Shown here one piece after another: positions 11,002 through 48,109 of a stretch of DNA of 64,000 nt. A program made the translations under genes and the position numbers. Position 1 is the first letter of the stretch. Each line of letters begins with the position of its first letter. The notes beneath the pieces were generated by a model. That model saw nothing but the letters and a program-made list of their open reading frames with translations, searched no databases and was not told where the DNA came from. The DNA lies in the IMG/VR virus record IMGVR_UViG_3300034050_000451, positions 62,001 through 126,000 of that record. The stretch is one strand, 5' to 3'.

Positions 11002-11023
11002 TAAGAGTTTTAACAAAACCGCA

Positions 11024-11053
11024 TAAAAAAGAGGGATAGTTTCCTATCCCTCT
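11024..11053 (-). terminator. Rho-independent terminator after the major capsid gene
   Basis: Minus strand AGAGGGATAG-GAAA-CTATCCCTCT perfect 10-bp stem followed by a T-run. Confidence 0.9.
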
Positions 11054-11076
11054 AATTCTATAAAATTAAGTTTCTA

Positions 11077-12717
11077 TTAAATAGAAGCTAAATCTTTAAC
11101 AAAAATACGACCGTAGTACTCAGGACGAACCATTTTCTTAGCGTATCTTGTCATTACACCTCTACGAGGAGTAAAGTTTGTTGGGTCATACACCAAAGGA
11201 GTCATAATTAATGGAACGTATGGTGCGTAAACAGCTCCAGTTTCCAAGAAGTTTGAACCTCTGAATCCTAACAAGATTTCGTTTGAAGTCATGTAAGGGT
11301 TTTTGTAAACAGTGTATCTATTAGCGATAGCACCAACTTGCGTTACACCAGCTGCGAAAGATGCAGAATCCTTATCAGCGTTCACTGTAAATGCAGGAAT
11401 CGATTCTAAGATAGTACATACATCAGGAGAAGCAACAACGAAGTTAGCTCCACCTCTTAATGTCAATTGGTGAATTTTGTTAGATACTTTGTTTAATTTA
11501 GTACCTAAAGTTTGGAACCAAGTATTCTTTTGGTAAGCCATTCCAGTTGCTGCTCCAGACCATACGCCTGATGCTGCATTGTATTCTTCACCAATAGTTG
11601 CTGACCAATACTCAGTAGTTAAAGCGTTTGATTTTAACATATCTAAGATTTCTAAGTCAATCTCTAAAGAGATATAATCAGATAACATAGAAGTTAATTC
11701 CGCTTCAGCGTCAATTGAGTGGTAAGCGTTCAAATCTTGCGCCAATTCAGGAGTCCATACTGCTTTCAACTTACGAGTCTTAGCAACGATAGCCTCTGAT
11801 TTCAATTCTAAGTCAACCTCAGGAATATCGATATCAGTTCCGATTGTTCCTTCAGTATCTGCTCTTTTACCAGAGTTTTTACCATCTTCAAAATCACCTC
11901 TAGAGTAATCATTTGGTACAACTGAGTAAGTTAATACTACAGTTTGTGCAGCAGTTTTAGCAGTTTGTAAACCAGCAGATGCTGATACGAACATTACTAA
12001 GTTAGCTCCAGATACTTTGTGGAATTGATTTAAGTTAGTAAGTGAACCACTTGCTACGTTAAATGAACGTACACCATCTAAATCAGCTGTTGTTGGAGCT
12101 GTGAAAGTTGCTTTATGCACTTGTCCAGCTGCTACAGAAGCAGAAAGTTCAGATGTAAATCCTACATCAGCCCAAGATGCTGAAGTATAAGTGATTGCAG
12201 AGTGAGCGAAAGATGCAGTTACATCATTTACTGTGTATCCGAATCTACCTTCACCATATAAACCATTTTCAGCTACTGCAGTAGTACCGAAACCAGCACC
12301 AGCAGCAGAATCTTGTCCGTTACCACCAAAAAGTGATTTTCCAGAGAAAGTTGGGTTACCACCTTGAGCAGTACCATATTTGAAATCCAAATAGAATACA
12401 AGTCCAGAAGGTAAGTTCATAGGTTGTACACTAACGAATTCTTTAGAAGCAATCTCACCGAAGATTCTTCTTACTAAAGGTAAAGCTACACCGCTCCACT
12501 CTTCAGAGTTTGCACCAACACCAGTTTGTGTTGCTTCATCAAGCAATTGTTTTGCTTGGTTTTCCAAAAGTACAGCCATTGCACTTTGGTCTTTTGTCTT
12601 TAAGCCTTCAAGAAGTCCAGTTTTTTCCCATTTTGATTTAAGTTGACGAGTTTCGTTCAACATAACCGATTGTGGGTTCTTTCCTTCCATTAACTTAGAT
12701 AAATCGAAATTTGCCAT
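11077..12717 (-). CDS. gp23: Major capsid protein (T4 gp23-like)
   Basis: VSVQPMNLPSGLVFYLDF, AKTRKLKAVWTPELAQDLNAYHSIDAEAEL, YAPYVPL and PRRGVMTRYA. Confidence 0.97.
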   Translation of the reverse strand: MANFDLSKLMEGKNPQSVMLNETRQLKSKWEKTGLLEGLKTKDQSAMAVLLENQAKQLLDEATQTGVGANSEEWSGVALPLVRRIFGEIASKEFVSVQPMNLPSGLVFYLDFKYGTAQGGNPTFSGKSLFGGNGQDSAAGAGFGTTAVAENGLYGEGRFGYTVNDVTASFAHSAITYTSASWADVGFTSELSASVAAGQVHKATFTAPTTADLDGVRSFNVASGSLTNLNQFHKVSGANLVMFVSASAGLQTAKTAAQTVVLTYSVVPNDYSRGDFEDGKNSGKRADTEGTIGTDIDIPEVDLELKSEAIVAKTRKLKAVWTPELAQDLNAYHSIDAEAELTSMLSDYISLEIDLEILDMLKSNALTTEYWSATIGEEYNAASGVWSGAATGMAYQKNTWFQTLGTKLNKVSNKIHQLTLRGGANFVVASPDVCTILESIPAFTVNADKDSASFAAGVTQVGAIANRYTVYKNPYMTSNEILLGFRGSNFLETGAVYAPYVPLIMTPLVYDPTNFTPRRGVMTRYAKKMVRPEYYGRIFVKDLASI

Positions 12718-24406: not shown

Positions 24407-27400
24407 CTATTCGTAAAATAATCCAAGAATTTGATTTAATGGTGCAAATGTACCTGTTAGTTTCATTGTATTTCCATTGTACACAAATACGATACCTTCG
24501 TTTGGAACTATTTTATCTTTTCCACCAATAGCGTTTAATCTTTGTAATTCCATTTTAAGTTTTGCTATCTTCTTTTCATCACCACCAGTCTTAACATCTG
24601 ATATAGTTTTATCTAATCTATCCTTCATAGCTCTAACCGCAGAATCAGGGTTTGCTGTAAGTACTGAACTCATAAATGAAAGTACTTCAGAGCCAACACC
24701 CAAAAATATATCCTCAAAAGGTCTAATATTATCCTTTGCTATCTTAGCGTGGTCATTCTTATCAATACCAGTTGCCCAACTTAATACTTTAGCATCGGTA
24801 ATGTTTTTATTGTCTAAACGGAATGATTTATCATAGAATGCCCATCTCTTAACCAATCCCATTAGAGTTCTATTATCAATCGGAGATGGTGATTTCTTAG
24901 TTACAAAATCAGTCCACCATGCTTGATGATAATCAGCAATACCATCCGTATCGGATAGTTTAAACTTAGATTGTAGTTTTGTAATCTGTCCACTATATTT
25001 TCCTTTTAATGAAGTTAAGTTTTTTGATTGTGGTAACTTAACAACTGGAGGTCCTTGTATTGTATAAGCCGATTGTACGTTTTGATTTACTTGCTTAATC
25101 ATACCAGCCAAAACTTTAGCTGCTTCTTGATTTTCACCAATTGCTATACCAGCTTCATTATATTCCATTGTTCCATGAAATACTAATAGTGCTTGTCCAT
25201 AAGGAATTACATTTACCGAAGTTGGATATATTACCTCCAAATTCATAAAACATGCACCATTCTTAAAAACTTTTTCTCTTTGTTTTTCTGAAAGTGATTT
25301 TATTGCTTTTGATAAATCACTCATAGCAAAGTTGTATGCTTTTTCTAACTCACCTCTTCCGGCAAACTTAGTAGCTACTCCATTTATATCCAATGCCTTC
25401 TCACCTCTATTAGCTAGATGTCCTTTGTTTCTAGCAGCAACTAATCTTCCATTCACCCAACTGATTGCTAATGCTTGTCCATCAGTTTTTTCTCTTGTCA
25501 ATTCCAACTTACCTTCTAATGCACGATTCACAATATCTTTAAGTTGTCCAAATGTTAAGTTAATTTCAGTATCAAATGGATGATTCATATGTCCATACGC
25601 ACCACCTTCAGTTAATAACCCCTCAGTTATGTTTGGGTTATTATCAGTTCCACATTTGTGACACATATAGGTATCACTTCCACCTTCAGAAATTTTCCAA
25701 CTCCAACCACAATTATCACAAATTACTTTACCATTTTCTACTCTTTCACTAATCCCACCACCCAATGCGTATGGTTCGTTATATTGTAATTTCTCAGCGT
25801 TAAATTTCTTTCTTAATCTTTTAAGAACTTCTTTATGTTTATCAATCCATGCTTGGTCTGGGTAACCCATTCCAATTCCTTCAAATGCTGATTTGGTTTT
25901 TACTTTATACCAACCACCACCCGGTGTTCTGAATATTCTTGCAGGTATTTCTAATATTCCATTTGATGGTAATTTAGAATGATACTTTGAATCAATATGA
26001 ACAACCTTTACAATGAATACTTTTTTCTTATTATCAGCTCCAATCAATTCAACTTCTAATGGAACTGCTACTCCACCTATTTTAAGTTTACCACCAAAGA
26101 TATTACCTTTAGTGTATGCTTCTTCTACTGATTTTTTAACCATTTCATATCCTTTATCTTCGGTATCCTTTGTATTTGTTTGATGACCAGGTTCTGTTTT
26201 TTTACTATCATCAAAATCAATTGTATCCAATTCTGCACCATATCCCATATCAGGTGTATATGTTCCCGATTTGTGATGTTGTAAAAAATTATGGTCTATT
26301 GTACCATCCGATTTATGATTTTTTGAATTAATATTTTCATTTTTACTTATTTCAATTGCTCTTAATTGCTTAAGTGCTTTCTCTTTAGTATCATGTGTTC
26401 CTAATCTATCACCACCATCCTTTGGATATACCACCCACTTACCATCAATATGTTTGATTGTTTCAACAGTCAATTTCATTGATTCTTTGCTTCTAAAATC
26501 TCTAGTTCCACCTTTATTATCTTTAAATCCGAATGATTTATAGAATTGGATTAATCTTCCCTTAGAACCCCCAAAATCAGATGATGGAGTTAAGAATACA
26601 TCTTTTTTGGTTTTCTTTGCATAAGTAATAATATCATTCATTACTTTTGTACCAATACCCTCACTTCTTTTTTCTTTTGGAACAACTATTCTGTGAATTT
26701 CTAAGTATTCTGGATATTCATATACATCCAATTCCACACCATGTTTTTTCCCCAAATGAGAGTCTAACGTTTCAGCAATTACTGATTCAAATTTATATTC
26801 AGGTGTTGTTGTTTTGAATTCACCTTTTCTCATTATAGTTTTTGCAATAGCTTTATTAGCTTGAAGCATAAATGGTATATTGATATTAGTTCTATTATCC
26901 TTTGCTACAACTTGGTTGTATTGAGTTAAGAATTCAACAAATTTCTTTTTATTTCTACCTAATCTTTTAAAGAACCCAGTTAGTTCTGCTGCTGATATTT
27001 CCTTACCATTTCTCGTATCATTTAATCTATCGAAAAAATGTTTATCAGTAAGAACGATATCAATTGGATTTAATTGTCTATCAGCGTATTTATCAATTTG
27101 TTGTAAATCAGCCATTGGGATTTCGTTAATTACCGATTCGTTTTTACCAGTATCTGCTTTTTTAGCAGCAACACCAATTTCTTCTGCAAATTTATTTGAC
27201 ATTGGTATCACATCCTTTATATCGGCATCAATAACAATAACTTTCATATTAGCAGGTTTCCCATCTCTAATTGCGTTTGTTGTTACAGCTGCCCAACGAT
27301 GATGACCATCCACTACATATCCATCTCTACTTACATAGATTGGAGCAGTAATCTTTGGATGATTCGGGTCATTCTCTAATGCCTTTGCCATACCAGCTAC

Positions 27401-28879
27401 CTTTGCACCAACTAATTCAGATTGAGTTGCTTTTAGAGAATCCGATGGTAATTCAGTTTGGATAGTTTTAATACCCTTTCTTTTCAATAGTTCTCTAAAC
27501 ATTGGTTCCGTATCAACTTCACCATTTATATCTTTTTCCATACTTGCCGCAGGTGAACCTTCGGTTGGTTTGCCTTTAAATTGTGGCATTTCCTCACGAG
27601 GAATTCCAGCATTACCAGCACAATATAAGTTTGTTCCAGCTACAGTTATTTTACATAAATTGTAATTAGGAGCTGCTTCACCATTTTCTTTTGCCTGATT
27701 TGTTAGTTGAACCAACTTATCAATCTGCATTGAAATTTCTCTTTGTTGCTTATTTGAAATTTTAGGAATATCCGATTCTGAACTAAATGTATCTGAATCT
27801 GCTTTTGGTAATACCTTAGTTACATTATCTAATGCAACATTTGGTATTTCAGTTTTGGGTTTTTCTTTTTGCTTAACATCAGGTGCATGTTTAAACATAT
27901 CCGAACCGGCTACTTTAGTTCCTTTAGATGGTTCCGATTTTGTATCACTAGCTCCATCTATTTTAACATACTTACCACCATCATTCTTTGAAAAAGATGG
28001 AGAAGATTCATCATCCTCTTTACCTTTTTGTTTATACACACCATGTCCAATATGAGTGTATTTGGAATCATCATTTTCATCTTCAAAGATTACTTGATAT
28101 CCTTCCTTTATCATTCTAAAAGTTGCTACCTTTTTACCATTGATAGTTGGCATTCCATGTTCATCTTTTCCAATAGTTTTTACAATAACTTTTTTATTTT
28201 TAAATCTACCCATTAAAATGGTATCTCCGATTTCAACATCTAATGTAATACCTTCATCTAAATTAATTGATTCTGGTAATTTGGAAAGTTTATCAACAAC
28301 CATATCAAAAATTGATTGATTGAATTTACCATAAGCTTTCTTTACAAAGAAATCTTTTTTATCCTCAGTACTACCTTTTTTTAAACCAATCCTAACATCA
28401 GTACCACTAATTGCATTTGGTTGTGCTGGTGATATAAAAACATACCCCCTATCAGCATATCCTTCCAATTCAATACTATCTTTGTATTTTTCAAAATACT
28501 TCCCACCCAAACGACTTGAATCTTTCTCACCAACCACAGTTATAAATGCAGTAGTTTCTTTATTGAATTTGCTTAGGATTTCAGTTGGAGCATAGGGATT
28601 TTTGACCTGAGCTATTTTGTTTGATGGGATACCAAACATAGTGGTCATTACCTTTACTTTCTCCTTAAAATTGAATGGGGATTTTTGATTGTCTGTTTTA
28701 TCAGAGGTTCCGATATAAACATTATTTTTTCCAAACTTTTTTACTAATGTTTGGTAAGTAGCGAAGTGCCCTTTATGAAAAGGTTGAAAGCGACCAGAGT
28801 AAACAACAACTAAGTCCTTTACACTGCTCGCTTCTCCTAATAATATACTCTCTACTAAAAACTTTGATAAATCACTCAT
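24407..28879 (-). CDS. Multidomain (polyvalent) protein: HIGH nucleotidyltransferase, ParB/Srx-like, GNAT, Zn-ribbon and ATP-dependent ligase-like domains
   Basis: GRFQPFHKGH; VVDGHHRWAA; VPKEKRSEGIGTKVM...FYKSFGF; CDNC...CHKC; EKTDG...EGIVF...MKLTG. Confidence 0.8.
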   Translation of the reverse strand: MSDLSKFLVESILLGEASSVKDLVVVYSGRFQPFHKGHFATYQTLVKKFGKNNVYIGTSDKTDNQKSPFNFKEKVKVMTTMFGIPSNKIAQVKNPYAPTEILSKFNKETTAFITVVGEKDSSRLGGKYFEKYKDSIELEGYADRGYVFISPAQPNAISGTDVRIGLKKGSTEDKKDFFVKKAYGKFNQSIFDMVVDKLSKLPESINLDEGITLDVEIGDTILMGRFKNKKVIVKTIGKDEHGMPTINGKKVATFRMIKEGYQVIFEDENDDSKYTHIGHGVYKQKGKEDDESSPSFSKNDGGKYVKIDGASDTKSEPSKGTKVAGSDMFKHAPDVKQKEKPKTEIPNVALDNVTKVLPKADSDTFSSESDIPKISNKQQREISMQIDKLVQLTNQAKENGEAAPNYNLCKITVAGTNLYCAGNAGIPREEMPQFKGKPTEGSPAASMEKDINGEVDTEPMFRELLKRKGIKTIQTELPSDSLKATQSELVGAKVAGMAKALENDPNHPKITAPIYVSRDGYVVDGHHRWAAVTTNAIRDGKPANMKVIVIDADIKDVIPMSNKFAEEIGVAAKKADTGKNESVINEIPMADLQQIDKYADRQLNPIDIVLTDKHFFDRLNDTRNGKEISAAELTGFFKRLGRNKKKFVEFLTQYNQVVAKDNRTNINIPFMLQANKAIAKTIMRKGEFKTTTPEYKFESVIAETLDSHLGKKHGVELDVYEYPEYLEIHRIVVPKEKRSEGIGTKVMNDIITYAKKTKKDVFLTPSSDFGGSKGRLIQFYKSFGFKDNKGGTRDFRSKESMKLTVETIKHIDGKWVVYPKDGGDRLGTHDTKEKALKQLRAIEISKNENINSKNHKSDGTIDHNFLQHHKSGTYTPDMGYGAELDTIDFDDSKKTEPGHQTNTKDTEDKGYEMVKKSVEEAYTKGNIFGGKLKIGGVAVPLEVELIGADNKKKVFIVKVVHIDSKYHSKLPSNGILEIPARIFRTPGGGWYKVKTKSAFEGIGMGYPDQAWIDKHKEVLKRLRKKFNAEKLQYNEPYALGGGISERVENGKVICDNCGWSWKISEGGSDTYMCHKCGTDNNPNITEGLLTEGGAYGHMNHPFDTEINLTFGQLKDIVNRALEGKLELTREKTDGQALAISWVNGRLVAARNKGHLANRGEKALDINGVATKFAGRGELEKAYNFAMSDLSKAIKSLSEKQREKVFKNGACFMNLEVIYPTSVNVIPYGQALLVFHGTMEYNEAGIAIGENQEAAKVLAGMIKQVNQNVQSAYTIQGPPVVKLPQSKNLTSLKGKYSGQITKLQSKFKLSDTDGIADYHQAWWTDFVTKKSPSPIDNRTLMGLVKRWAFYDKSFRLDNKNITDAKVLSWATGIDKNDHAKIAKDNIRPFEDIFLGVGSEVLSFMSSVLTANPDSAVRAMKDRLDKTISDVKTGGDEKKIAKLKMELQRLNAIGGKDKIVPNEGIVFVYNGNTMKLTGTFAPLNQILGLFYE

Positions 28880-28937: not shown

Positions 28938-29264
28938 TTATTTAGCCGCTTGCTCTTTAAAAGCTGGATTATAAGTAATAGTACCTTCTCTTAAATCGAT
29001 TTGACCTCTTGGGTATTCCTTTTCAAGACCAGCTACTAATTCTCTCATCGCATCATTTTGAGATTTAAAATCAGCTTCAGCTCTTTCTAAACCATCATGT
29101 AGTTTATCCATTTCTTCTTCTAATTCTTTTCTTCTCAAATAGATTTGCCCGAAAGCGTTTACTAATTCTTGAATTTTACCATTGCCTTCTCTTAGTGGAG
29201 TAAGGATATCTTCGGTTAATTCTACTGTAACTAACTCGATTTTTTGAATTGTTTCGTTTGCCAT
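28938..29264 (-). CDS. Small acidic coiled-coil protein (paralogue of 33811-34083)
   Basis: C-terminal YPRGQIDLREGTITY versus YPNGQIDLEAGTVVY in the paralogue. Confidence 0.7.
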   Translation of the reverse strand: MANETIQKIELVTVELTEDILTPLREGNGKIQELVNAFGQIYLRRKELEEEMDKLHDGLERAEADFKSQNDAMRELVAGLEKEYPRGQIDLREGTITYNPAFKEQAAK

Positions 29265-29310: not shown

Positions 29311-30063
29311 CTAACTGAAATTTTCAGAAATTACACTTACCCCACGTTTTTGTATAACCTGAGATGAACATCGATTTCCAAATATAATTGATTCATTAAT
29401 ATTATTTGTTTCCAAATACTTTGTAGTGAATCCTGCTACAAAAGTATCACCTGCTCCTGAGATATCCATTATCTCAACTTTATCAGTTGGATACATATTG
29501 TTTAAATACATACATCCATCTTTATCTAATGTGATTATTAGTTTTTCTAAAATCCATTCATTATTTTCAATAAATGATTTATTATTTTGATATTCGGTTC
29601 TGTTTAATTTAATGAACTTTAAATCAGTGCACCATTCTCCTAATTTTTTTTTAGTATCACAAATTGTATTAGGGTGATTAAATGCTATTTTAGCAATATC
29701 AGTATCACTTAGAAATCCTTTGTTATAATCCGATATGACTATCATATCAAAATCATAAAAATTTATTTCAGAAAGTGTATTACCAATAGGCGGAACTACA
29801 TCATCAATATCAACTCGTAAAAGTAAATGATTAAAACTTTCCTCAACATATCTCTTTTTTACAATCAATTGAGTATTACAAATCAATTCAGTTTTACAAC
29901 CCAATGCTTCTAAATTTTCTTTAACATTATAAGCCATACCACCATTGGTGATTGTATGTGATTCTATAAAAACAGGTGCAGGTCCTTCAGGTGATAATCG
30001 TGTAGCTTTTCCATAAACGAATTCATCTAAACATCCCTCACCTATAATTAATACTTTACTCAT
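29311..30063 (-). CDS. hldA: Heptose-7-phosphate kinase (HldE/RfaE domain I, PfkB family)
   Basis: IGEGCLDEFVYGKATRLSPEGPAPV, GGMAYNVKENL, SDYNKG and DISGAGDTF. Confidence 0.85.
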   Translation of the reverse strand: MSKVLIIGEGCLDEFVYGKATRLSPEGPAPVFIESHTITNGGMAYNVKENLEALGCKTELICNTQLIVKKRYVEESFNHLLLRVDIDDVVPPIGNTLSEINFYDFDMIVISDYNKGFLSDTDIAKIAFNHPNTICDTKKKLGEWCTDLKFIKLNRTEYQNNKSFIENNEWILEKLIITLDKDGCMYLNNMYPTDKVEIMDISGAGDTFVAGFTTKYLETNNINESIIFGNRCSSQVIQKRGVSVISENFS

Positions 30064-30445
30064 TTGTTAATATTTTAGTTGTACTGAAATCATCCATTCG
30101 ATTAAAATACACAATTGATTTTGCGTATTGTTCTCCCACTATTGGTTTATTTTTATAATCAGACCCAATTACAAATATATCAGGGTTATATGTTTTAATT
30201 ACATTTTCTAATAATTCAGCTGAATCAAATATAACTACTTTACTAACTCCTTTAATTCTTTCCAAATTATACTTTCGTTCTTCTTCAGTATGGAACGGTC
30301 TATCTTCTCCTTTTAATTCCTTTACTCTCCTATCGGAATCAATTCCAATAATAACAATATCACCAAAGGCAGATGCGAACTCAATCATCTTAAAATGCGC
30401 ATGATGTAAAACATCAAAACATCCATTTAACCAAACCTTTTTCAT
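30056..30445 (-). CDS. hldC: Heptose-1-phosphate nucleotidyltransferase (HldE/RfaE domain II)
   Basis: NGCFDVLHHAH, IDSDRRVKELKGEDRP, GSDY and FSTTKI. Confidence 0.85.
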   Translation of the reverse strand: MKKVWLNGCFDVLHHAHFKMIEFASAFGDIVIIGIDSDRRVKELKGEDRPFHTEEERKYNLERIKGVSKVVIFDSAELLENVIKTYNPDIFVIGSDYKNKPIVGEQYAKSIVYFNRMDDFSTTKILTNE

Positions 30446-31584
30446 AGAAACTTTTCTAATTCATTAATAACCATCTGAGATGTAATTGCTTTAGTACATT
30501 CAAATTGCCTATCCGTACCTTTATGGTCTGGACACCAATTCCAATCACCAGCATCTAATTTTAATCGGTTAAAGCATCCACCACATTTATCTTTAGGTGA
30601 AGTTATTCTAACACAATCTTGCATTTCTGCCCAATCATATGAGAATCCACTAATCAATACCGTCTTTGTACCCAATGCCCAACTTAACCAACTTAACCCA
30701 CTACCAATACCAATGAATGCTTTTGATTTTCTCATTTCATCCATTACTTTTTCCAAAGAACCGGCTGGGTGTTTGACTACTCCAGTTGGGTGTTTATTAC
30801 CCATATAATCATTATTCTCTTGTGATAATAGTTTAACTGTATAACCTTTATCATTTAACCAATTCACTACTTCTTGCCAACCATTTGGGTTATTCCAATA
30901 CTTAGATTGAGCAGTTCCATGTATTGCTATTGTTATTAACTTATCATCTTTAACAATATCTGATGATGGTAACTTTGGTTTTATTTCTTTATATGGTAAT
31001 CCCAATATATCAGAACCCATTTTTTGCATTGTTTGGGATTTAAAATCGTTTGGATTTTTTCTGTTATTTACACTACCATCTTCATTATAGAATAAACCAA
31101 CAGTATACATTGCGTATAAATTTTCAACACTTTGACCTGGTTTTACAAATTCTATATTTGGATATTGTGACTCTAACATTTCGTTATGAAATGTAGATAC
31201 AATTAATTCACAATTATGTACTTTCTGAAATTCGTCAAAGTATGGAAACCATGCTAATGTATCACCCAATGCTTTTGATGATAGTGCTAGATAAACTCTC
31301 TTATTAGTTGCGGTATAATCATGTTCAAAAAATAAAGTATTACCTTCCCATATTTCAATTCTCCAATCTATAAAATACTCAATATTACATTTAGCCCAAG
31401 TATTGTTTGATAATTCGGTTGTGAATAAAACATTACCATTACGTTTGTTTATAAACTTAACATTGTATTTACCCGTTTGGTTTCCCAATACTTCAGCCCA
31501 AGGACCATTTACGAAATGATAATTTACTTTATTTCGTACTTCAACAATGTTATTTAAATTTTTAGTTAATTTATCGTAAATCAT
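30442..31584 (-). CDS. Aah/TibC-type (autotransporter) protein O-heptosyltransferase
   Basis: N-terminal beta domain (YFIDWRIEI), LGDTLAWFPY, TAQSKYWNNPNGW, FIGIGSGLSWLSW...LISGFS and the Cys set CGGC...WCPDH...FECTKAIT; start placed at the TAATG overlap (31584; alternative 31593). Confidence 0.88.
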   Translation of the reverse strand: MIYDKLTKNLNNIVEVRNKVNYHFVNGPWAEVLGNQTGKYNVKFINKRNGNVLFTTELSNNTWAKCNIEYFIDWRIEIWEGNTLFFEHDYTATNKRVYLALSSKALGDTLAWFPYFDEFQKVHNCELIVSTFHNEMLESQYPNIEFVKPGQSVENLYAMYTVGLFYNEDGSVNNRKNPNDFKSQTMQKMGSDILGLPYKEIKPKLPSSDIVKDDKLITIAIHGTAQSKYWNNPNGWQEVVNWLNDKGYTVKLLSQENNDYMGNKHPTGVVKHPAGSLEKVMDEMRKSKAFIGIGSGLSWLSWALGTKTVLISGFSYDWAEMQDCVRITSPKDKCGGCFNRLKLDAGDWNWCPDHKGTDRQFECTKAITSQMVINELEKFL

Positions 31585-33746
31585 TAATTCCATTTTTTTA
31601 CTTCTCTATCAATAAGAGAAAATCCATCTGCTTGTTTAACATACATTTTATTTGTAGTATATCGTAATTTAGATTCTTTATTAAACACATCAGTTAACCA
31701 TAAATCATATCCCTCCCATAGGGTATCATTAAATCTATCAATCCACCAACTCTTTGTTCTATTTGGTATTAGATACGCATGTGCTAAATCTTGGTTTGAT
31801 GCAGTTTTACTGAATAAATCATCAATGTATTCTTTACTTCTGGAATTATTGTTTGATAATCCAATAAAGTAAACATCATCTCTTTCAGAAATAAAACATG
31901 CTTTATGAACTGCTTCAACAAATTCTTTTAATCCAGTGAATATAAACGCATCAGCTTCAAATACTAATGTATAATCAAATTCATCATCCATAGCTTCTAA
32001 TGCTCCCCTATGTGCGTTAAAGCACCCATAATGCCTACCCGTTAATGGACCTAATCCATTCCCAAAGTTTCCCGGCTTATCCGATATCTGATTTGGTCTT
32101 TTACAAAAATCAGATGGTGGTGTTCCATCAAATGGAGTATTTACAATTGGTTGATACACCATTCCATAACTTTCCAATTGTTTTAGTGATTCTGAACTAA
32201 TTTGTTCTCTCAAATCATTTGGCTTAGTCATCAAATGTTTAATTTGAATCTTTGGTTTTTTTCTAACAAATGAACGATATACGTGCTTTGCTTGATTATA
32301 AAAAAATTCATCAGCTGCTCTAGTAACCCCCGGAAAGAAACTTCCACCATAATCATCTCCACTAATAACACCACCCGGTTTTACTTTATGATACCAAAAG
32401 TTTAAATCGGATTTTAAAGAATCATAAGTATGACCCGCATCCAACATAATAAAATCAATTGAGTTATGTTGAAATTGATTTGATGCGTTTTCAGATGTAT
32501 CCTTTATTACGTTAAATAATTTTGAGTTATTACTTAACATAGTATTTTCCATAAATTCTGAAAATATATCCCCACCAAATCCACCAACTATTGTATCATG
32601 TATTTCTTCACCATCGGTACCTTTCCAAGTATCAACAGTTGTAAATTTAATATCTTTATTAGAATCTTTAATTAAGGTAGCCATATGATTGGTTGATTTA
32701 CCCAACCATGCACCCAACTCAACAAATACATCACCATCGGTTCCATTTTCAACCATTTCATTATACAAATGTTCATATGAAAACCAACCAGGAATTTCAT
32801 TAAATTCAGGTTGTAGTTTTTCTAATATAATTTGTTTGGTTTGATTTAGGTTATCATCGATATAAGTAACCAATTCATTATTATCATATGAATCCAAATA
32901 TGTGTGTAGTTTTCTGAATATAGATGGTAATCCATATCCCAATGCCTCTTTAATAGATAATGGATTTAATTCCAATTTAGAACTAAAGTAAAACATATCC
33001 GATGCTTTGTAGAATTTATCTACATCACTACGTTCACCCCATACAATACAATTATCAGGTTTGTGTTTCATTATTGGTCCCCAATATGATTCAAAGTTCA
33101 TAGCTTGGTTTCCGATAAAATGAAATTTAATTTTATATTTTTCTAATAATCTAGCTACGTTGAATATTTCACCCTGATTCTTACCTTCAGTAAATAATCC
33201 AACCATAAGAACATGCTTCCAATCAGATTCAAATCCCAATTCGTTTTTGAATTCGTTTTTATCATACTCAATAGTTTCTATTGGATAATCCCATACACGT
33301 GTATCTACTCCCACCAATTCAAATCTTCGTCTACTCCATTCAGATACTAAAACATATCTATCTGGATGATATTTGATTTCATTTGGATTTGTATGAGAAC
33401 CATGTGTAGATGCTACAATATAGTAATTTCTACTATTGTCAAAAATAGTATCTAATATATTGTGAGCTAAAAAATGTTCGGGGATTTCCGTAAAATGAAT
33501 TATGTTTGGTTGAGTTGATTTAATAATATCCACAAGTTCGGATTTATTATCACCCAATGTGTACAACTTACATAAATCAGCTATTTGATTCTTTTGTACT
33601 ACAAAGGCATCACCAGAGTGATTGTTTACCTCAACTACCTCAATATCAAATTTATCTTTAAAGATTTGAATTTGCTTTAAAAGGTATTGTGGCATCCCAC
33701 CAGTTGAGAGATGGGATGCTATATATAACAATTTTTGTTTTGACAT
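31584..33746 (-). CDS. Tri-domain enzyme: GT-B (GT4-like) glycosyltransferase, class I SAM methyltransferase and GT25-like glycosyltransferase
   Basis: HLSTGGMPQY...ELNPLSIKEALGYGLP; VELGAWLGKS...LDAGHTY...VKPGGVISGDDY; YGCFNAH...LVFEADA...AHAYLI. Confidence 0.8.
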   Translation of the reverse strand: MSKQKLLYIASHLSTGGMPQYLLKQIQIFKDKFDIEVVEVNNHSGDAFVVQKNQIADLCKLYTLGDNKSELVDIIKSTQPNIIHFTEIPEHFLAHNILDTIFDNSRNYYIVASTHGSHTNPNEIKYHPDRYVLVSEWSRRRFELVGVDTRVWDYPIETIEYDKNEFKNELGFESDWKHVLMVGLFTEGKNQGEIFNVARLLEKYKIKFHFIGNQAMNFESYWGPIMKHKPDNCIVWGERSDVDKFYKASDMFYFSSKLELNPLSIKEALGYGLPSIFRKLHTYLDSYDNNELVTYIDDNLNQTKQIILEKLQPEFNEIPGWFSYEHLYNEMVENGTDGDVFVELGAWLGKSTNHMATLIKDSNKDIKFTTVDTWKGTDGEEIHDTIVGGFGGDIFSEFMENTMLSNNSKLFNVIKDTSENASNQFQHNSIDFIMLDAGHTYDSLKSDLNFWYHKVKPGGVISGDDYGGSFFPGVTRAADEFFYNQAKHVYRSFVRKKPKIQIKHLMTKPNDLREQISSESLKQLESYGMVYQPIVNTPFDGTPPSDFCKRPNQISDKPGNFGNGLGPLTGRHYGCFNAHRGALEAMDDEFDYTLVFEADAFIFTGLKEFVEAVHKACFISERDDVYFIGLSNNNSRSKEYIDDLFSKTASNQDLAHAYLIPNRTKSWWIDRFNDTLWEGYDLWLTDVFNKESKLRYTTNKMYVKQADGFSLIDREVKKWN

Positions 33747-33771: not shown

Positions 33772-33803
33772 CAAAGATACAAAATTAATTTGGTATTTCC
33801 AAA
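33772..33803 (-). promoter_or_regulatory. Bacteroidota housekeeping-sigma-type promoter for the sugar island
   Basis: Minus strand TTTG-N20-TATCTTTG. Confidence 0.75.
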
Positions 33804-33810: not shown

Positions 33811-34083
33811 TTAATAAACTACCGTCCCAGCTTCTAAATCAATTTGTCCATTTGGATATTTAATATCCAATTCAGCAAGTTCGGTATTCATATCAGCAAT
33901 AGATTTATCGATTCTATTACCAAATTCTTTTTCTTGAGATTCAATATCTGCAATTTGAGATTGTAATTGTCTTTTACGAACAGCCGATTGTCCCAATGCA
34001 ATAATCATATTGTTTTGTTCTTCTTGAATTGATTTTAATTTATCAATTACCGATTGTTCTAATTGTTCAGTTTTTTGTTCCAT
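33811..34083 (-). CDS. Small acidic coiled-coil protein (paralogue of 28938-29264)
   Basis: LGQ...coiled coil...YPNGQIDLEAGTVVY. Confidence 0.7.
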   Translation of the reverse strand: MEQKTEQLEQSVIDKLKSIQEEQNNMIIALGQSAVRKRQLQSQIADIESQEKEFGNRIDKSIADMNTELAELDIKYPNGQIDLEAGTVVY

Positions 34084-34551: not shown

Positions 34552-37500
34552 TTATCCCGTTGGAAGATTACCAATAGCTATCCAATACCCATCAACACTA
34601 TCTAATACTAAACTAACACCAGATGTGGTAAGGTTATATATATGATTATATCCATTTGAACCATTTGAACTTCTATAAGATGCACAAGTTACAACCGGTG
34701 GTGAACCAAATGTTACAGGGAATGTTACGTTAGCAGAACTATTTATTCTTCCCCATTGTATAATACTACCATCTGATAATTTTTGGTAATTATTTGTAGA
34801 CATTGAACTAGCAACCGTATTTGTTTGGTGTTGGTTTCCTAATCCAATAAGGTTATCGGTATAAGTATATGCAAACCTATTTGATGAGTTACCAATATTG
34901 TACAATGAATCAGATTCAGGTATAATATCACCCTTTGAATTAATAGCTGTTGAGGTATCAACCCCAAGACCAACTGTTTTTTCAAAATATGATATACCAC
35001 CGGCTGCTTTAAGTACTTCTTGATTAGCTGAACCTGCTGGTTTTCTTGGTATTCTAACATAGGTATCAGGTGTTGATACTACTTGAATACCACCGGCTTT
35101 AATCTCAACGAAATTGGATGGAACAGATACATTTAATATAGTATCGTATGTTGGTGTATTTGCTAAAGTTGGCCCAACAGTATGTGATTGGTATGTAAAT
35201 GAATATGAATTAATACTGGAACCAATATTTGCTCTTTGACCCGAATACCCATAAAATCTAATTGAATATCTAAATCTAATATTACCAGTAGATGTTAGAT
35301 TCATTGAGCGCGTTACACCAGTTTGGGCAGAAACATTATTTTGATAACCACTTATAGTGTTGGTTGAAATATATGTCCAAGTACCATCATTATGTGATAT
35401 AATATCATCTGAAACATAGTTATGAACTCCAGGTACAGAAAATGTATATACCCATTCATCGGTTTTAATAATTTCAACACTATCAACTAATACCAATTTA
35501 ATACCATTACCATCTTTGATGTTAATCATACTTTTACCAGCAACTAATTCAACAGTCTTTATTTGTTTATTATCGTTTAACCAAAATCCATGCGAATCAG
35601 ATACTCTAATAGTTTTACCACCGGCTGATACTTTGTAAACTTTATCAACTTTTCTCTTTTTAATTTTAGCTATTTCAAATTCACTAAATTTGTTTACTTC
35701 AGTATTATCTAATTTATCATTCCAACTCCATGCTATTATTTTTTCACCTTCAACAACATCTTTAGCAAGAATAGTTTCACCAGATGATAATATAATTTTA
35801 GTATCACCAGTTACGGATACAAAACTTTCAAGTTTTACGTTGTGGGTTAATATACCATTAACATAATAAGTATGCTTACCAGATACTCTAATGTTATAAA
35901 CATCATCGGTTTTCTCATTTATAGTTATTGATGTTATCTCAACTTCTTCATTTTCTGAATTTAGGAATATATCTCCAACATTTATTTTATCAGTTGTTTT
36001 AATACACCAAACACCATTTTGTTTAATAATATGTTTGTGTGAGTGTGTACATTCAATTAATCCATTATTTATATTGTAAATTTCATTATCAGCATATGAT
36101 TTGATATCCAACACCTCTTCAATTGTTTTTTCGGAATCGGATATATGGGTTGCAGTCCAATCATTTTCTTCGGAATATTTTGGTGTTAATGAATCAATAT
36201 CTAATGATTTAATAAAATCACCAATTTGAATATCTTTAATTTGTTTGAATGAACCATCACCCATTTCAATTAGTGATGTTCCAACTAAACACGTTCCACC
36301 TCCCCCTTCTTCTATATATTCTCCGGTATAATAATTACCAGCATTATATGAACTAACAGCTGCGGCTGTTCCAAGTAAAGTTCTACCCACAACAACACCA
36401 GTAGAAATATTAACTGCTTCTAAATTTAATTCTGCGTATGCAACAGATGGTGATGAATACCCACCATGGAATTGCCCATTGAATGTAGGTAAATACGATG
36501 GGTATGATGTGGTATGACTAACTCCTGCTGGAATTGATACAGATACGGCTGGTATATTTAGTGCAACTTCAAGTGCTCCTGCTGCTGTAACATTATATGA
36601 ACCCGTTGATGGTAATGATACCATATAACTCGAATAAACAAAATTGGCATTAGATGTATTTGTTGTTACCGATTGTGGTGTTGGATATACAACCCCCGAA
36701 CCCGTAAACTGAAAGTATTTAACATCACCTGTGGTTGTTGTTAATTCATTTGAAGGTGATATAATTACCTTTTTTTCACTACCAGTATAAAATTGTAATT
36801 CAGGTAAAGATGGGTCAAATATTATTTCACTATTATCATCACGTAAATTACCACTATCAGCATCAATAATCCAATCTCCGATTCTACCATCAGTTGCGTT
36901 AATACTACCAGATAAACCTGCATTATTAGCGTTTACATTTCCATTAGCATCAACAGTAAAATTATATCTAATTGGATTTGAACCAGAAATTATTCCTATG
37001 TTAATAGCTCCTCCATTTATTTCAGAACCATTAATTGTTGAACCTTGAACGTTTCCTGAGAAATTAACACCATCACCCGTATAGTTCAAATATGCACCAT
37101 CTTTACTTCGTAATGAGAATAACGGGTCATCTGACCCAGATGGAAATCCTAAAAATACACCAACCTCATCAAAACTTTGACTTAATTGCCCCATTGAAAG
37201 GTATGGTTTATCGGATTGATTTAATGTTGAACCTGATGTTGATAATCGCAATCCCTCACCAGAAATTATTCTAAATTCACGACTACCCGCTGATAATGAA
37301 CCTTGTGTATATGTGTAATCACCATTGGTATTGGGATAATAATAAGAGGCACTTGCGGCGGAATTAAATTTAATTGTTTGACCATATGGATTTGATGCTG
37401 ATAGAAATAATCGAGTTTCATCTTCAGAAATTCCATAAATTTTCATTGCAGGGAAATTCAAAACATTACCAATACCCAATACAGCTACATCAAATGCTTT

Positions 37501-43038: not shown

Positions 43039-43212
43039 ATGAATAAGAAATATGCTATGTTACAAATTGATGCTGAGGTTCATCAATTGTTAAAAGATTT
43101 TTGTAAAGATAAGGGTTATAAAATGAATGGGTTGGTTGAGAGTCTAATTAAAGATAAAGTATCCCCATTTAAAACTCAACAACCAACCAATATTTTAAGA
43201 ACTAGAACTTAA
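43039..43212 (+). CDS. Ribbon-helix-helix DNA-binding protein, 57 aa (absent from the ORF track)
   Basis: MNKKYAMLQIDAEVHQLLKDFCKDKGYKMNGLVESLIKDKV...: alternating beta strand, helix, conserved Gly, helix; fills an otherwise empty intergenic gap. Confidence 0.75.
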   Translation: MNKKYAMLQIDAEVHQLLKDFCKDKGYKMNGLVESLIKDKVSPFKTQQPTNILRTRT

Positions 43213-46200
43213 CGCTAGAGAACCCATTCACTTTTTTAATTTCCATTAAGGAATCTACTACATCTCGCATTGAATCAATATGTGATATAATCATCACAAA
43301 GTCAAATTGAGTTTTAAGATAAGCGAACAACATATACAATGATGTTAAGTTCTCATTATCTAATGTTCCAAATCCTTCATCCACTACTAAGAAGTTTGGA
43401 CGAGGCAGGTTACATACGTTGATTAGAGCGATTCTAATTGCCAATCCTGATATAAACTTCTCCATACCACTACACATCTCTAAACTCCATTTCTGGTCAT
43501 CATAGACAATATTAGCGTTGATGTTTTTACCATCCATATCCAATTGAACTCCGAACTCTACAATTTGACCTAAGATATTATTAACCTCACCTTCAATCAT
43601 AGGAAGTGCCTTTGATATCAATTCATATGATATACCATCCTTACTTAATGCATTTAAATAGTATTCATATAATCCAAATTGTTCTTCTAACTCCTCAACC
43701 TCTTTTATTCTCGCCTCAATAGTTTCCTTTTGATTTGTAAGGGATGATACATCACCATTTAAGTTAAGAAGTAATTTATTCTTTTGCTCTACTAATGTTT
43801 TAGAAGATGCTAAATCAGTTCTTACAATTTGAATTTCAGTTCTGATTTCTTTGTTCTTTTGGATTTGTTTTTCATTCTCCAAATAATCAGCTATAAGTTG
43901 TGTAACTTCCTTAACTTCATTCTCTAGCTTAACTTCTTGAGTTTCAATTGTTGATAACTTGTTAATAAGTGTTGATAACTCTCGTTCTACCTTAGTTTCA
44001 TCTGATTTGGTATCACTTAACAACTTCCAACTTACTTCATAATTCAATAATGAATTTACAGATGATTCTAATTCTAACTTAGTTTCATTATACTGAGATT
44101 GCCTTTCCTTAAATTCTTTAATAGATTCAACGGCTTCCTTTTTAGCTTCTAAAATAGTTGCTGAGTTTTCCATACAAACATTACAATCTTCATTGTACTT
44201 ATGGGAATCTAAATGTTCCTTTTTATCATATAAAGATTCTAACTTAATATCAATCTTTTCAATTTCGTTTGTAAGGGTTTGTAATTGCTCCCTTTGAGTT
44301 TTTAATCTACCAATACCACTTTCTATATCTGCTTCATCAAATCCCTCCAATGCCCCTAATAACCTATCTCTATCGGATTGTAATATAACGATATCAGCTT
44401 TAGTTTTAGATTGTTGTTTCAACAAGTCGATTAAATTATTTCCTAATGTCGATTTTTTATTTTCTAATTCAGTTAATGAATATGTATCCGATTTTAAAGG
44501 AACTATTTTTTCGTTGAGAGAAATTAATTTTTGATTGTAGGTATCCACACTTCCAGTTGCTTCATTAAGTTGAGCTTCTATCAAACTATACTCTTTGTTC
44601 TTACTAATAAGGTTAGTTTCTATATCAGCTAATCGTTGAGTGAAATCATCCTGCTTAAACTTTCTGATTAGAGAAGCGTTATCCCTATTTTCATCCGATG
44701 CTATGGTGTATAACTTATCAAATACATCAACTCCCATAAACTGAGCAAGAATCTCTTTACGTTCGGTTTGTGATTTATCAATAAATAGTGCGTTATTACC
44801 CTGAAGTGATAATGTAGTTAATACAAAATCCTCATAACTTCCCATATATTGTTGGATGATGGAATTGGTTTCCCTCCTTTGCTCTCCATTCAAAGAGGTA
44901 ACCAACCCATCTTCAACTTTCCAAAAGTCAACATCAACTTTGATGTTTTTTCCTTTATTAATTATTTTTGCTTTCCTTTCAATAAAGTAATTAATCCCAT
45001 CGATTTGGAAATTAAGTTTACAGTCAAATTCCGTTTTTCTATTATTAAGAATGTTCTTTGCTAAATACGTTCTACTTGTCTTGTCAAAAATACAAAATGA
45101 AATAGCATCAAATAGAGATGATTTACCACTAGCATTTGGTGCAAATACACCAACCATTCCCTTAGCGTTATCAAAACGAATTAAGTTGTTTGGTCCATAT
45201 GAAAACATATTTGAAAACTCAAATGTCTTTGGTATCCATTGTATATTAGGAATACTTTCCTCATCAACTAATCGAGTATTTAATTCTCTATTAATTTGTT
45301 GAATCTTATCAATCGTATCAGCATCAGCGAAGTATTGTCTTTTTAGATAATCTCTAATCAATTCATTTTGGAATTCAACATCCCTAACATTACCAATAGA
45401 AAGTTTATCATCATAATTACCAGTCTTTTGTTTGGATAATGTATCCATTCTAGTTACTGTAAATTCTTCAACTTTGTATTTCTTTTTGATATCAGTTAAT
45501 ACTCTTTTAATTTTAGATGGGTCAGTATTGGAAATACGAACTCTCAAACGAGGTTTTGCCGGCATATCCGTAACCGCTGGTACAACCCCATTAATTACAT
45601 CTAATGTATAAAACCCATAATCATTTTCAATATCAAATTCCTCAAATGTTCTTGATTCAACATCCCATAAAAGGTAACCATGCTTATCCAATGATTCTCC
45701 GTGGTTTTGTTGGATAAGTGAACCAGCATATGCAATGGTAGGAATACCCAACGTTTGTCTTTTATGGATATCACCTAACATAACCATATCAAATCCTTCA
45801 AACATATCAGTTGTAAATGAATTTGATGATACAGTATAACCAATATCAGTTTCTGCATTATTTACAGGCCCGTGAAATAAACAAATTTTATTCTCACCTT
45901 CTACCACTTCAGCCTTTGGCCAATTCTCTTTTTTGTCAAGTATCGAATACACAACAAAAGTAATATTGTTAAAGGGATAGATGCCAGTATCTCTAAGATA
46001 GTGAATTCTTTCATTATTTAAGTTTTCTACGATTGGTGTAAGTACATCCAATCTATAATTATTATTTAAGTTACAGTCGTGATTTCCGGTAATTAAAAAT
46101 GTTTCTTTTAAATTAGCACATTCGGTTAGAAACCAACTAATCTCTCTAACCAATTCCGGACTCATTTCAGTTTTAGCATGGGCAATATCACCAGCCAAAT

Positions 46201-46333
46201 AGATAATAGAATTTTCAATATTATCTTTTCTAACATTTTCTAAAAACTTATTGAATACATCTCTGTACTCATTATGTCTTTTTAAGTTACGGATATGTAA
46301 ATCCGCTAAGTGATAGATTTTTTCTACTTTCAT
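43202..46333 (-). CDS. Fused Mre11/SbcD-Rad50/SbcC (gp47-gp46-like) recombination nuclease
   Basis: Phosphoesterase motifs DLH, GD, GNHD, HG, GDIH; Walker A APNASGKSS, Zn-hook CNVC, signature CSGMEKF, Walker B VVDEGFGTLD, ISH. Confidence 0.92.
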   Translation of the reverse strand: MKVEKIYHLADLHIRNLKRHNEYRDVFNKFLENVRKDNIENSIIYLAGDIAHAKTEMSPELVREISWFLTECANLKETFLITGNHDCNLNNNYRLDVLTPIVENLNNERIHYLRDTGIYPFNNITFVVYSILDKKENWPKAEVVEGENKICLFHGPVNNAETDIGYTVSSNSFTTDMFEGFDMVMLGDIHKRQTLGIPTIAYAGSLIQQNHGESLDKHGYLLWDVESRTFEEFDIENDYGFYTLDVINGVVPAVTDMPAKPRLRVRISNTDPSKIKRVLTDIKKKYKVEEFTVTRMDTLSKQKTGNYDDKLSIGNVRDVEFQNELIRDYLKRQYFADADTIDKIQQINRELNTRLVDEESIPNIQWIPKTFEFSNMFSYGPNNLIRFDNAKGMVGVFAPNASGKSSLFDAISFCIFDKTSRTYLAKNILNNRKTEFDCKLNFQIDGINYFIERKAKIINKGKNIKVDVDFWKVEDGLVTSLNGEQRRETNSIIQQYMGSYEDFVLTTLSLQGNNALFIDKSQTERKEILAQFMGVDVFDKLYTIASDENRDNASLIRKFKQDDFTQRLADIETNLISKNKEYSLIEAQLNEATGSVDTYNQKLISLNEKIVPLKSDTYSLTELENKKSTLGNNLIDLLKQQSKTKADIVILQSDRDRLLGALEGFDEADIESGIGRLKTQREQLQTLTNEIEKIDIKLESLYDKKEHLDSHKYNEDCNVCMENSATILEAKKEAVESIKEFKERQSQYNETKLELESSVNSLLNYEVSWKLLSDTKSDETKVERELSTLINKLSTIETQEVKLENEVKEVTQLIADYLENEKQIQKNKEIRTEIQIVRTDLASSKTLVEQKNKLLLNLNGDVSSLTNQKETIEARIKEVEELEEQFGLYEYYLNALSKDGISYELISKALPMIEGEVNNILGQIVEFGVQLDMDGKNINANIVYDDQKWSLEMCSGMEKFISGLAIRIALINVCNLPRPNFLVVDEGFGTLDNENLTSLYMLFAYLKTQFDFVMIISHIDSMRDVVDSLMEIKKVNGFSSVKF

Positions 46334-47289: not shown

Positions 47290-47321
47290 CAAATATACGA
47301 ATAATATTTGATATATCCAAA
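47290..47321 (-). promoter_or_regulatory. Bacteroidota-type promoter for the primase and Mre11-Rad50 genes
   Basis: Minus strand TTTG-N20-TATATTTG. Confidence 0.75.
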
Positions 47322-47553: not shown

Positions 47554-47681
47554 CAAATATACGAAAAATTTCCCAGTATACCAAATATTTTTGATAAAAT
47601 TTTCCACTATAAATTGATTTAAGTACAAATATAGTGAAAATTTTCCATTATACCAAGTCTTTTCGGTAAAATTTTCCACTA
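47554..47681 (-). repeat. Two 56-bp imperfect direct repeats (72-bp period), each containing a Bacteroidota-type promoter
   Basis: 47554-47609 and 47626-47681; TTTG-N20-TATATTTG and CTTG-N20-TATATTTG. Confidence 0.8.
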
Positions 47682-48109
47682 ATATTGCCATTTAGGCAAT
47701 TGTCATCTGAAAGGACATCGTATTTGAACATCCAATATACCTCATAATAAGATAGTGATTTTTTAGAATTGCAGAATTGGATGATTTCTCGTTTGAACTC
47801 ATCTTGCTTTCCTTCTTTAACTTGTTCGTTTATCCACTCATTAGATGAGTAGTATTTTTCCCAATCGGATGTTTTACGAACCTTCTTTTTAAGAGGAGCT
47901 CTACCACCCATTCCGGCTGCCTTACGCTCCCCCTTAATTTTTGCAAGTTCTCTTACTCCGATTTTTACATTACGAACACTTTCAAGTGATTTCTTTCCAA
48001 TGTAGTATTTGCCGCTTGGGGTGTGTGTTATCATATAGATAAACCCAACAGCTTCTTCAGAGATTACATCTTCGGTAATCTCTTTATTTTCACATAACCA
48101 ATTTGACAT
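47648..48109 (-). CDS. GIY-YIG family nuclease
   Basis: GFIYMITHTPSGKYYIGKK, YYSS, FKREII, YYE and terminal N motif. Confidence 0.8.
   Translation of the reverse strand: MSNWLCENKEITEDVISEEAVGFIYMITHTPSGKYYIGKKSLESVRNVKIGVRELAKIKGERKAAGMGGRAPLKKKVRKTSDWEKYYSSNEWINEQVKEGKQDEFKREIIQFCNSKKSLSYYEVYWMFKYDVLSDDNCLNGNISGKFYRKDLV

Follow-up and report, generated by a model that had tools for sequence, protein, structure and literature searches.

What would a phage do with an enzyme of the kind that decorates bacterial adhesins with heptose, and on which protein would such an enzyme act? The question is raised by a stretch of DNA of 64,000 nt (the window), positions 62001-126000 of the IMG/VR virus record IMGVR_UViG_3300034050_000451. 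Four minus-strand open reading frames (ORFs) at 29311-33746 of the window, of 720, 383, 129 and 250 aa and with successive overlaps of 10, 4 and 8 nt, encode a three-domain glycosyltransferase-methyltransferase-glycosyltransferase (GT-MT-GT) protein, a homologue of the bacterial autotransporter heptosyltransferases (BAHTs) Aah and TibC, a sugar-1-phosphate nucleotidyltransferase and a sugar kinase. To our knowledge, BAHTs have been known only as hyperglycosylating enzymes of AIDA/TibA/Ag43-type adhesins in Proteobacteria. Those known form a dodecameric ring and transfer heptosyl residues to serines of proteins. The answer preferred here, which we judge about equally likely to be right or wrong, is that the four genes make up a phage-borne protein O-glycosylation module around the BAHT, in which a structural protein of the phage is heptosylated, the glycan is extended by the GT4 and GT25 domains and capped by O-methylation, and the nucleotidyltransferase and kinase boost the donor. 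A preliminary description of the window, made from its sequence, had reported four overlapping genes after a fibre gene, its chaperone and one small gene, and the coordinates and overlaps found in this study agree with it.

The 383-aa protein scored 285.6 bits, over residues 20-381 of 383, on the NCBIfam model TIGR04414 (hepto_Aah_TibC), for which the curated equivalog cut-off is 200 bits. It matched the PDB sequence of TibC (4rap) with an E value of 3.4e-55 over residues 32-381 and about 34% identity, and the N-terminal barrel region specific to BAHTs (TibC_1st) was detectable in it. Models of the lipopolysaccharide (LPS) heptosyltransferases gave 29.7 bits (TIGR02193, heptosyltransferase I, cut-off 185.3) and 24.5 bits (PRK10964, cut-off 437). 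The preliminary description had suggested the search against the autotransporter heptosyltransferase family and had considered a grouping with the LPS enzymes of family GT9; both these scores and the tree given below set the protein apart from the latter.

The functional residues of TibC were taken from its structure paper, in which Asp110 is the catalytic base, Thr226 and Lys230 contact the beta-phosphate and Trp305 contacts heptose-O4 (PMC4358343). They were scored on an alignment of 86 sequences, including 42 of the viral clade and 41 cellular ones. All four are found in the window protein (D111, T227, K231 and W302) and are invariant in 42 of 42 viral-clade sequences. The iron-finger cysteines of TibC (C339, C342, C358 and C370) are likewise present, as C337, C340, C354 and C366, in the window protein and in all 42 viral-clade sequences; this predicted four-Cys finger is not found in WaaC/F/Q. 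The claim of an Aah/TibC-type enzyme with a full four-Cys set was thereby confirmed.

In a maximum-likelihood tree of 83 BAHT rows with WaaC/F/Q (Shimodaira-Hasegawa-like approximate likelihood ratio support), the BAHTs were split from WaaC/F/Q with a support of 99. Thirty-six of the 39 viral sequences fell in one clade (support 97), joined by three contigs binned in metagenome-assembled genomes (MAGs), while the remaining 41 cellular sequences formed a separate clade (support 91). The sequences of the cultured Microcystis phage Mel-JY01 and of the huge-phage records LR756501 and LR756504 were unresolved at the base. One of the MAG contigs, L095, has ordinary cellular neighbours, so that the viral clade is not strictly viral. 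On this 139-kb betaproteobacterial contig the viral-clade BAHT (8010-9137, 47% identical) lies among genes for a Na/H exchanger, a DEAD helicase, TctC and an M48 peptidase, is preceded by a 311-aa ORF and has no autotransporter nearby, which suggests BAHT exchange between phages and Betaproteobacteria.

The 720-aa protein encoded directly upstream was modelled with AlphaFold from 36 homologues (predicted local distance difference test, pLDDT, 85.3; predicted template modelling score 0.70), and three domains were distinguished. Foldseek matched the N-terminal domain to the retaining GT4 enzymes BshA, MshA, PglA and WaaG (best E 9e-12), the middle domain to the mycobacterial polysaccharide O-methyltransferase MeT1 (6g7d, E 6e-8) and the C-terminal domain to the human collagen galactosyltransferase GLT25D1 (9evj, E 4e-7). 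The model and these matches, together with the Pfam and atlas results in Table 1, bear out the GT-methyltransferase-GT fusion proposed beforehand. Copies of the GT4 domain, 41-44% identical, accompany BAHT in other lineages as well.

The BAHT gene is translationally coupled to the HldC-like and HldA-like genes. The 129-aa nucleotidyltransferase has a cytidylyltransferase fold, matches phrog_7878 (named heptose-1-P adenylyltransferase) with an E value of 7e-39 and is 34% identical to gp309 of cyanophage P-SSM2. For the 250-aa kinase, which matches phrog_8133 (E 2.5e-73) and has cyanophage homologues 31-48% identical to it, the best PDB match is Burkholderia HldA (4e84), aligned at both ends and retaining the GAGD motif; relative to HldA, about 60 residues are missing from the middle of the kinase. 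T4-like cyanophages (P-SSM2, S-SM2, S-CAM1 and others) carry a similar pair, T4-GC 304/305, which is adjacent, overlapping and 31-48% identical, and in P-SSM2 the kinase/nucleotidyltransferase gene order is as here and the pair likewise lies among tail-fibre genes. In the cyanophage clusters a short 'phosphoheptose isomerase' and epimerases accompany the pair and there is no BAHT; in the window no isomerase or phosphatase was found. A comparable donor cassette is found in Caulobacter phage Cr30. The HldA/HldC-like pair is hence not new in phages, as the T4-like cyanophages and existing annotation attest; its coupling to a BAHT is new.

The short 'phosphoheptose isomerases' that stand with the pair in P-SSM2 (L152, 8610-10066) and S-SM2 (L151, 9001-16951) have 103-114 aa, about half the length of GmhA. 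The small gene orf108, at the end of the module, was considered as a counterpart of these proteins and discarded, there being no similarity between them.

Table 1. Features of the putative glycosylation module and its upstream neighbours, in window coordinates.
Feature	Coordinates	Strand	Basis or remark
Giant tail fibre, 2789 aa	34552-42921	-	gp53-like C-terminus
Tail-fibre assembly chaperone, 128 aa	34139-34525	-	Pfam Phage_tail_APC E 5.9e-16; PHROG tail fibre assembly families
orf90, 90 aa, E/Q/K-rich, aromatic-poor	33811-34083	-	Paralogue of orf108; in this position in 74/81 related loci
Bacteroidota sigma-A-type promoter, TTTG-N20-TATCTTTG	33772-33803	-	Directly upstream of the operon
GT-MT-GT protein, 720 aa	31584-33746	-	
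GT4-type retaining GT-B domain, residues 1-305 of 720	32832-33746	-	Pfam Glycos_transf_1 1.2e-10; Foldseek
S-adenosylmethionine-dependent (sugar O-)methyltransferase domain, residues ~325-485	32292-32774	-	Pfam Methyltransf_24 2e-18, TylF 6e-5; Foldseek
GT25-like GT-A domain, residues ~498-705	31632-32255	-	Pfam GT25 E 0.048 only; atlas neighbours are GT25 clusters; Foldseek
BAHT (Aah/TibC-type) protein O-heptosyltransferase homologue, 383 aa	30442-31593	-	TIGR04414, TibC 4rap, key residues, tree
HldC/RfaE-domain-II-like sugar-1-phosphate nucleotidyltransferase, 129 aa	30056-30445	-	rfaE_dom_II, phrog_7878
Compact HldA/RfaE-domain-I-like PfkB sugar kinase, 250 aa	29311-30063	-	rfaE_dom_I, phrog_8133
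orf108, small, E/L-rich	28938-29264	-	Paralogue of orf90; closes the module; in 76/81 loci, with or without the donor cassette

Relatives of the BAHT were numerous: 182 in IMG/VR, of which 80 were retrieved, and 2620 in the protein collection. Gene order was compared over 81 related viral loci, where it runs fibre, (chaperone), orf90, GT-MT-GT, BAHT, (nucleotidyltransferase, kinase), orf108, a 1490-aa protein, orf225, terminase and portal. The succession of fibre, orf90, GT-MT-GT, BAHT and orf108 is kept in about 75 of these 81 loci at protein identities of 60-76%, and the module sits within the structural block, with the fibre on one side and the terminase and portal genes on the other. The nucleotidyltransferase/kinase pair was found in 19 of 32 non-redundant relatives, with about four gains or losses on the BAHT tree, and is an accessory cassette. 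Two metatranscriptome runs yielded contigs of relatives 90-95% identical, covering parts of the BAHT and GT-MT genes; these are directionless assemblies and possibly derive from DNA.

No Pfam or PHROG family was found for orf90 or orf108, and a relationship of the two to gp57A was rejected, the likeness being in composition only. The N-terminus of the 1490-aa protein downstream (24407-28879, minus strand) is that of an NMNAT-like nucleotidyltransferase; a GNAT domain lies at about residues 722-786, and there is also a zinc-ribbon-like stretch. The protein ranges from about 800 to 1500 aa among relatives, and its N- and C-terminal parts are kept in Mel-JY01. It was considered as a part of the system and set aside, since its N-terminus is NMNAT-like and parts of it occur in Flavobacterium phage immuto without the cluster. 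The immuto phages in general, though related, are without the cluster.

Outside this lineage, too, BAHT is fused or adjacent to GT4 and/or methyltransferase domains. Mel-JY01 encodes a 1226-aa fusion, annotated 'methyltransferase FkbM', beside a 'structural protein'. Methyltransferase-BAHT fusions lie a few kb off a terminase gene at two loci (L078 and L081), other combinations occur at two more (L079 and L080), and in LR756501 a GT4-BAHT fusion adjoins a collagen-repeat protein. Viral-clade BAHTs are carried by upwards of 180 contigs of IMG/VR and by metagenomic proteins numbering in the thousands. Only 4 of 50,697 deposited phage records contain the BAHT, and PHROGs has no family for it.

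The identical sequence is found on IMG/VR contigs of up to 270,865 bp, and 177 assembly-collection blocks record one of the window's proteins on contigs of about 270.8 kb; the window is part of an aquatic phage genome of about 270 kb. All genes of the window are read from the minus strand, and its G+C content is about 31%. The T4-type core genes present are those for a baseplate wedge protein, primase, a fused SbcD/SbcC, large terminase, portal, prohead protease, gp13, gp15 and the Gp23 capsid protein, a T4-like lytic set; no lysogeny gene was seen within the window. By terminase comparison the nearest cultured relatives are Mel-JY01 (56%) and the Flavobacterium 'immuto' phages (55%).

The pattern TTTG-N19-21-TAnnTTTG is a promoter pattern specific to Bacteroidota sigma-A. 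It stands directly before the operon (Table 1) and twice before the primase gene (47290-47321 and 47554-47585), and because of these promoters the host is probably a member of the Bacteroidota. This prediction matches the one made for other aquatic jumbo phages (PMC12619734). Among 44 distinct regions upstream of the operon in relatives, 35 keep the pattern, although the proteins have diverged by 30-40%.

The structural genes of the window have a different motif. The octamer TATTTATA (gene orientation) occurs 14 times, of which 11 fall in the intergenic 4.4% of the window, mostly 21-49 nt before start codons (for example at 2768, 9503, 19114, 21370, 28907, 29300, 51251 and 63424), and the variant TACTTATA stands before orf225, orf90 and the fibre gene (24387, 34108 and 42951). 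TAyTTATA is thus a candidate for the late-type promoter of this lineage. The T4 late promoter TATAAATA was also considered and is not enriched in gene orientation, whereas its reverse, TAyTTATA, is. Because of its own conserved TTTG-N20-TATCTTTG, the operon can presumably be transcribed separately by a host-type polymerase; read-through from the motif ahead of orf90 may be a further route.

If the module works as proposed, the HldA-like kinase and the HldC-like nucleotidyltransferase would raise the supply of nucleotide-activated heptose in the infected cytoplasm, the isomerase and phosphatase steps being provided by the host or from elsewhere in the 270-kb genome. The donor of TibC is ADP-D,D-heptose (PMC4358343), and because TibC itself uses this compound the epimerase HldD would not be needed. 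The BAHT would then attach heptose to Ser/Thr residues in a protein that is folded and rich in beta structure. In the three-domain protein, the GT4 and GT25-like domains would lengthen the glycan and the methyltransferase domain would O-methylate it. The acceptor would most likely be a virion protein of the phage itself, with the giant fibre just upstream as first candidate, and the particle would leave the cell with a methylated heptose-containing glycan. What the sequences establish is the gene content, the family to which the transferase belongs, and the conservation of its residues, of the gene order and of the promoter. The donor's identity, the sequence in which the glycan is built and, most of all, the acceptor are inferred; coating of the virion is plausible and is the best-supported reading. 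In its favour stand the BAHT family assignment with its conserved residues, the coupling to the donor genes, the GT4/O-methyltransferase/GT25 architecture, the conserved gene order within the structural block, and the recurrence in other lineages of BAHTs joined to GT4 or methyltransferase domains near structural genes.

It is by its adjacency that the fibre becomes a candidate acceptor. S and T make up 20% of its 2789 residues; conservation among relatives extends over residues 1-1600, beyond which (1600-2789) the sequence varies. A search of PDB sequences found no solved relative of the fibre apart from two Hint domains. These tandem, bacterial-intein-like domains (35389-36291, minus strand; fibre residues 2211-2511) span residues 2211-2363 and 2365-2511 and lie just ahead of the receptor-binding C-terminal part. 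Cys is the initial residue of the first domain, and both domains terminate in HN, which in the second is followed by Asp. In an AlphaFold2 model of fibre residues 700-1600 a chain of Ig/cadherin-like beta-sandwiches was seen at about 800-1420 (pLDDT 70-90 there, 64.6 overall).

Several observations weigh against a heptosylated virion protein. The fibre contains no short-period or AIDA-like repeat in repeat analysis, and its conserved shaft, as far as modelled (residues 700-1600, a third of the fibre), is Ig/cadherin-like and not a beta-helix. A tblastn search with an E. coli AIDA-type autotransporter gave no match in the window or in any viral locus, whereas the same search found a homologue beside BAHT in 24 cellular loci. 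No similarity of the fibre to autotransporters was seen in the PDB sequence search, the repeat analysis, tblastn or the model of residues 700-1600. In front of the operon, as of the primase gene, stands a separate host-type promoter instead of the TAyTTATA motif of the structural genes. On the donor side, no GmhA, GmhB or HldD was found in the 64-kb window, as the preliminary description had noted, nor any GmhA or GmhB within 10 kb on either side in relatives; in scans of IMG/VR with a single GmhA sequence and with a GmhA profile, no contig known to carry the phage BAHT was among the matches listed, which for the profile were the best 80 of 319. The cassette is missing in 13 of the 32 non-redundant relatives (about 40%). 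Its genes had been described as a heptose-1-P nucleotidyltransferase and a heptose-7-P kinase, which holds for the best-matching families, rfaE_dom_II (100.7 bits, TagD giving 67.8) and rfaE_dom_I (116.9 bits), but both scores lie below the curated cut-offs of 181.5 and 345. Finally, the position of TibC Arg286 is occupied by Val283 in the window protein and by Val, Leu, Ile or Ala in 41 of the 42 viral-clade enzymes.

These observations can be read in other ways. The same enzymes might modify cell-surface or secreted proteins of the host, either masking receptors against superinfection or altering adhesion or gliding proteins, which we consider unlikely. Every BAHT substrate characterised so far is an adhesin of the cell surface that receives its sugar in the cytoplasm, prior to export, and the conserved, primase-like sigma-A-type promoter of the operon would also fit an early, host-directed function; a viral-clade BAHT is, moreover, found in the ordinary betaproteobacterial chromosome context of L095. 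Against modification of host proteins stand the place of the module within the fibre/terminase/portal block, which is kept across the lineage, the occurrence of BAHT beside fibre-like or structural genes in other phage lineages, and the T4-like lytic gene set of the window with no lysogeny gene; late expression is also possible by read-through from the upstream TACTTATA motifs. An acceptor other than protein, whether LPS or lipooligosaccharide (LOS) core, capsule, lipid-linked oligosaccharide or DNA, appears very unlikely. Building a LOS core classically takes a GT9-fold heptosyltransferase together with GT4, GT25 and a heptose donor pathway, the GT4 neighbours include WaaG, GT25 is a family of LPS galactosyltransferases, and the residue at position 286 is hydrophobic as in WaaC/F/Q. 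The homologous donor genes of cyanophages and Cr30 also lie in clusters annotated as LPS or capsule type, and phage publications interpret heptosyltransferase genes as LPS auxiliary metabolic genes. The enzyme itself speaks otherwise: LPS heptosyltransferase models reach only 25-30 bits against cut-offs of 185-437 where the BAHT model passes, the tree separates it from LPS GT9 with a support of 99, and the N-terminal barrel region and four-Cys iron finger, both absent from WaaC/F/Q, are conserved.

The choice of donor can be questioned independently of the acceptor, since a nucleotide sugar other than ADP-heptose, differing in base or sugar, could be combined with any of these acceptors. Two positions deviate systematically from TibC. 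In TibC, Arg286 forms a hydrogen bond to adenine N1, and changing it to Ala abolishes or strongly reduces activity, while Pro300 determines D,D/L,D selectivity (PMC4358343). The adenine contact is kept in 38 of 41 cellular BAHTs and lost in nearly the whole viral clade, and the stereoselectivity position (Pro300/Ser294) is Gly in the phage enzyme. The absence of the cassette from the 13 relatives and from Mel-JY01, where searches for homologues of GmhA and of the kinase also found none, and the membership of the nucleotidyltransferase in the cytidylyltransferase superfamily, with a score below the HldC cut-off, point in the same direction. If the donor were different, the nucleotidyltransferase/kinase pair would make that compound or serve only some relatives. 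The contacts to the beta-phosphate and heptose-O4 (T226, K230 and W305) are invariant, though, the nucleotidyltransferase prefers rfaE_dom_II over TagD, the best solved relative of the kinase is HldA, and LPS heptosyltransferases that use ADP-heptose also lack this Arg, carrying a hydrophobic residue there. A different donor appears distinctly unlikely, and we infer ADP-heptose as the donor, without certainty because of the replacement of Arg286.

Compared with Aah and TibC, the window enzyme shares full-length homology, the catalytic Asp, the Thr/Lys/Trp contacts, the four-Cys finger and the TibC_1st region. It differs in being phage-encoded, in belonging to a separate clade, in having no adjacent AIDA-type autotransporter and in the replacements Arg286 to Val and Pro300 to Gly. 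Unlike Aah and TibC, phage BAHTs also have GT4, GT25 and methyltransferase domains as partners, in part within one fused protein. An alphaproteobacterial MAG (L143, about 3800-12400) provides a contrast to the phage module: there, GmhA, HldE-like, HldD and GmhB homologues stand beside a BAHT and an AIDA-type autotransporter as a self-contained cellular heptosylation island.

Glycosylation of virions has precedents. Chlorovirus A064R is reportedly a multidomain GT/methyltransferase. The mycobacteriophage and chlorovirus systems resemble the present one in that GTs of the virus (with methyltransferase domains in the chlorovirus), encoded beside the structural genes, act in the cytoplasm on virion proteins; they differ in using other GT families and sugars, with no heptose and no BAHT. 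For mycobacteriophages, virion glycosylation is on record in the work of Freeman et al. (2023), as far as it is represented by its citation in PMC12619734. The latter paper describes 'moraphages' and other aquatic Bacteroidota jumbo phages, for which hosts among the Flavobacteriia are predicted and whose core genome includes several glycosyltransferase orthogroups; it does not mention heptose or BAHT. A search of the literature on heptosyltransferase, TibC, ADP-heptose and virion glycosylation in phages, cyanophages and jumbo phages found no description of a phage BAHT, in keeping with the preliminary description, which knew of no functional account in phages. The nearest mentions, both generic, are the glycosyltransferase orthogroups of the 'moraphages' and a 'heptosyltransferase I' of a wastewater huge phage, taken as an LPS auxiliary gene. 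Automatic JGI annotation already calls these proteins autotransporter O-heptosyltransferases.

Judged from its genes, the module would represent a kind of protein glycosylation so far undescribed in phages, a known enzyme system in a new setting. A broader proposition, that the viral-clade BAHTs form the core of a widespread phage system which O-heptosylates its own fibre or other virion proteins and builds on them an extended methylated glycan, is put forward tentatively, at somewhat less than an even chance. If true, this would be the first protein heptosylation outside proteobacterial autotransporters, with a phage supplying part of the donor pathway, and in hosts, probably Bacteroidota, that may have no heptose of their own; nothing of use on this point was found in publications on Flavobacterium LPS heptose. 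The existence of a large separate phage clade with its own partner enzymes, an optional cassette and no autotransporter implies a new acceptor class and makes a novel form of virion or host-protein glycosylation probable among abundant aquatic phages. It also poses a testable question, namely what a BAHT recognises when no beta-helix passenger exists, for which Mel-JY01 is a cultured carrier. A new reading would also open for the heptose genes that lie among the tail-fibre genes of T4-like cyanophages and have long carried the annotation 'LPS genes'.

Some further features of the genome may be recorded. Beyond position 1 of the window, past the gp15-like gene, giant proteins of 2772 aa and 3994 aa are encoded (L153, 11834-20152 and from 21046), which are without a Pfam hit on record and are further candidate fibres or acceptors. 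A single ORF of 1043 aa (43202-46333, minus strand) has PHROG matches of SbcD-like (residues 2-359) and SbcC-like (277-1042) type and apparently unites the T4 nuclease subunits gp47 and gp46 in one protein. Near the primase gene, a SegE-type GIY-YIG homing endonuclease gene (47648-48109, minus strand) stands between long intergenic gaps. Within the structural block, two neighbouring DUF2589 paralogues of 158 and 200 aa are encoded at 9589-10694 (minus strand).

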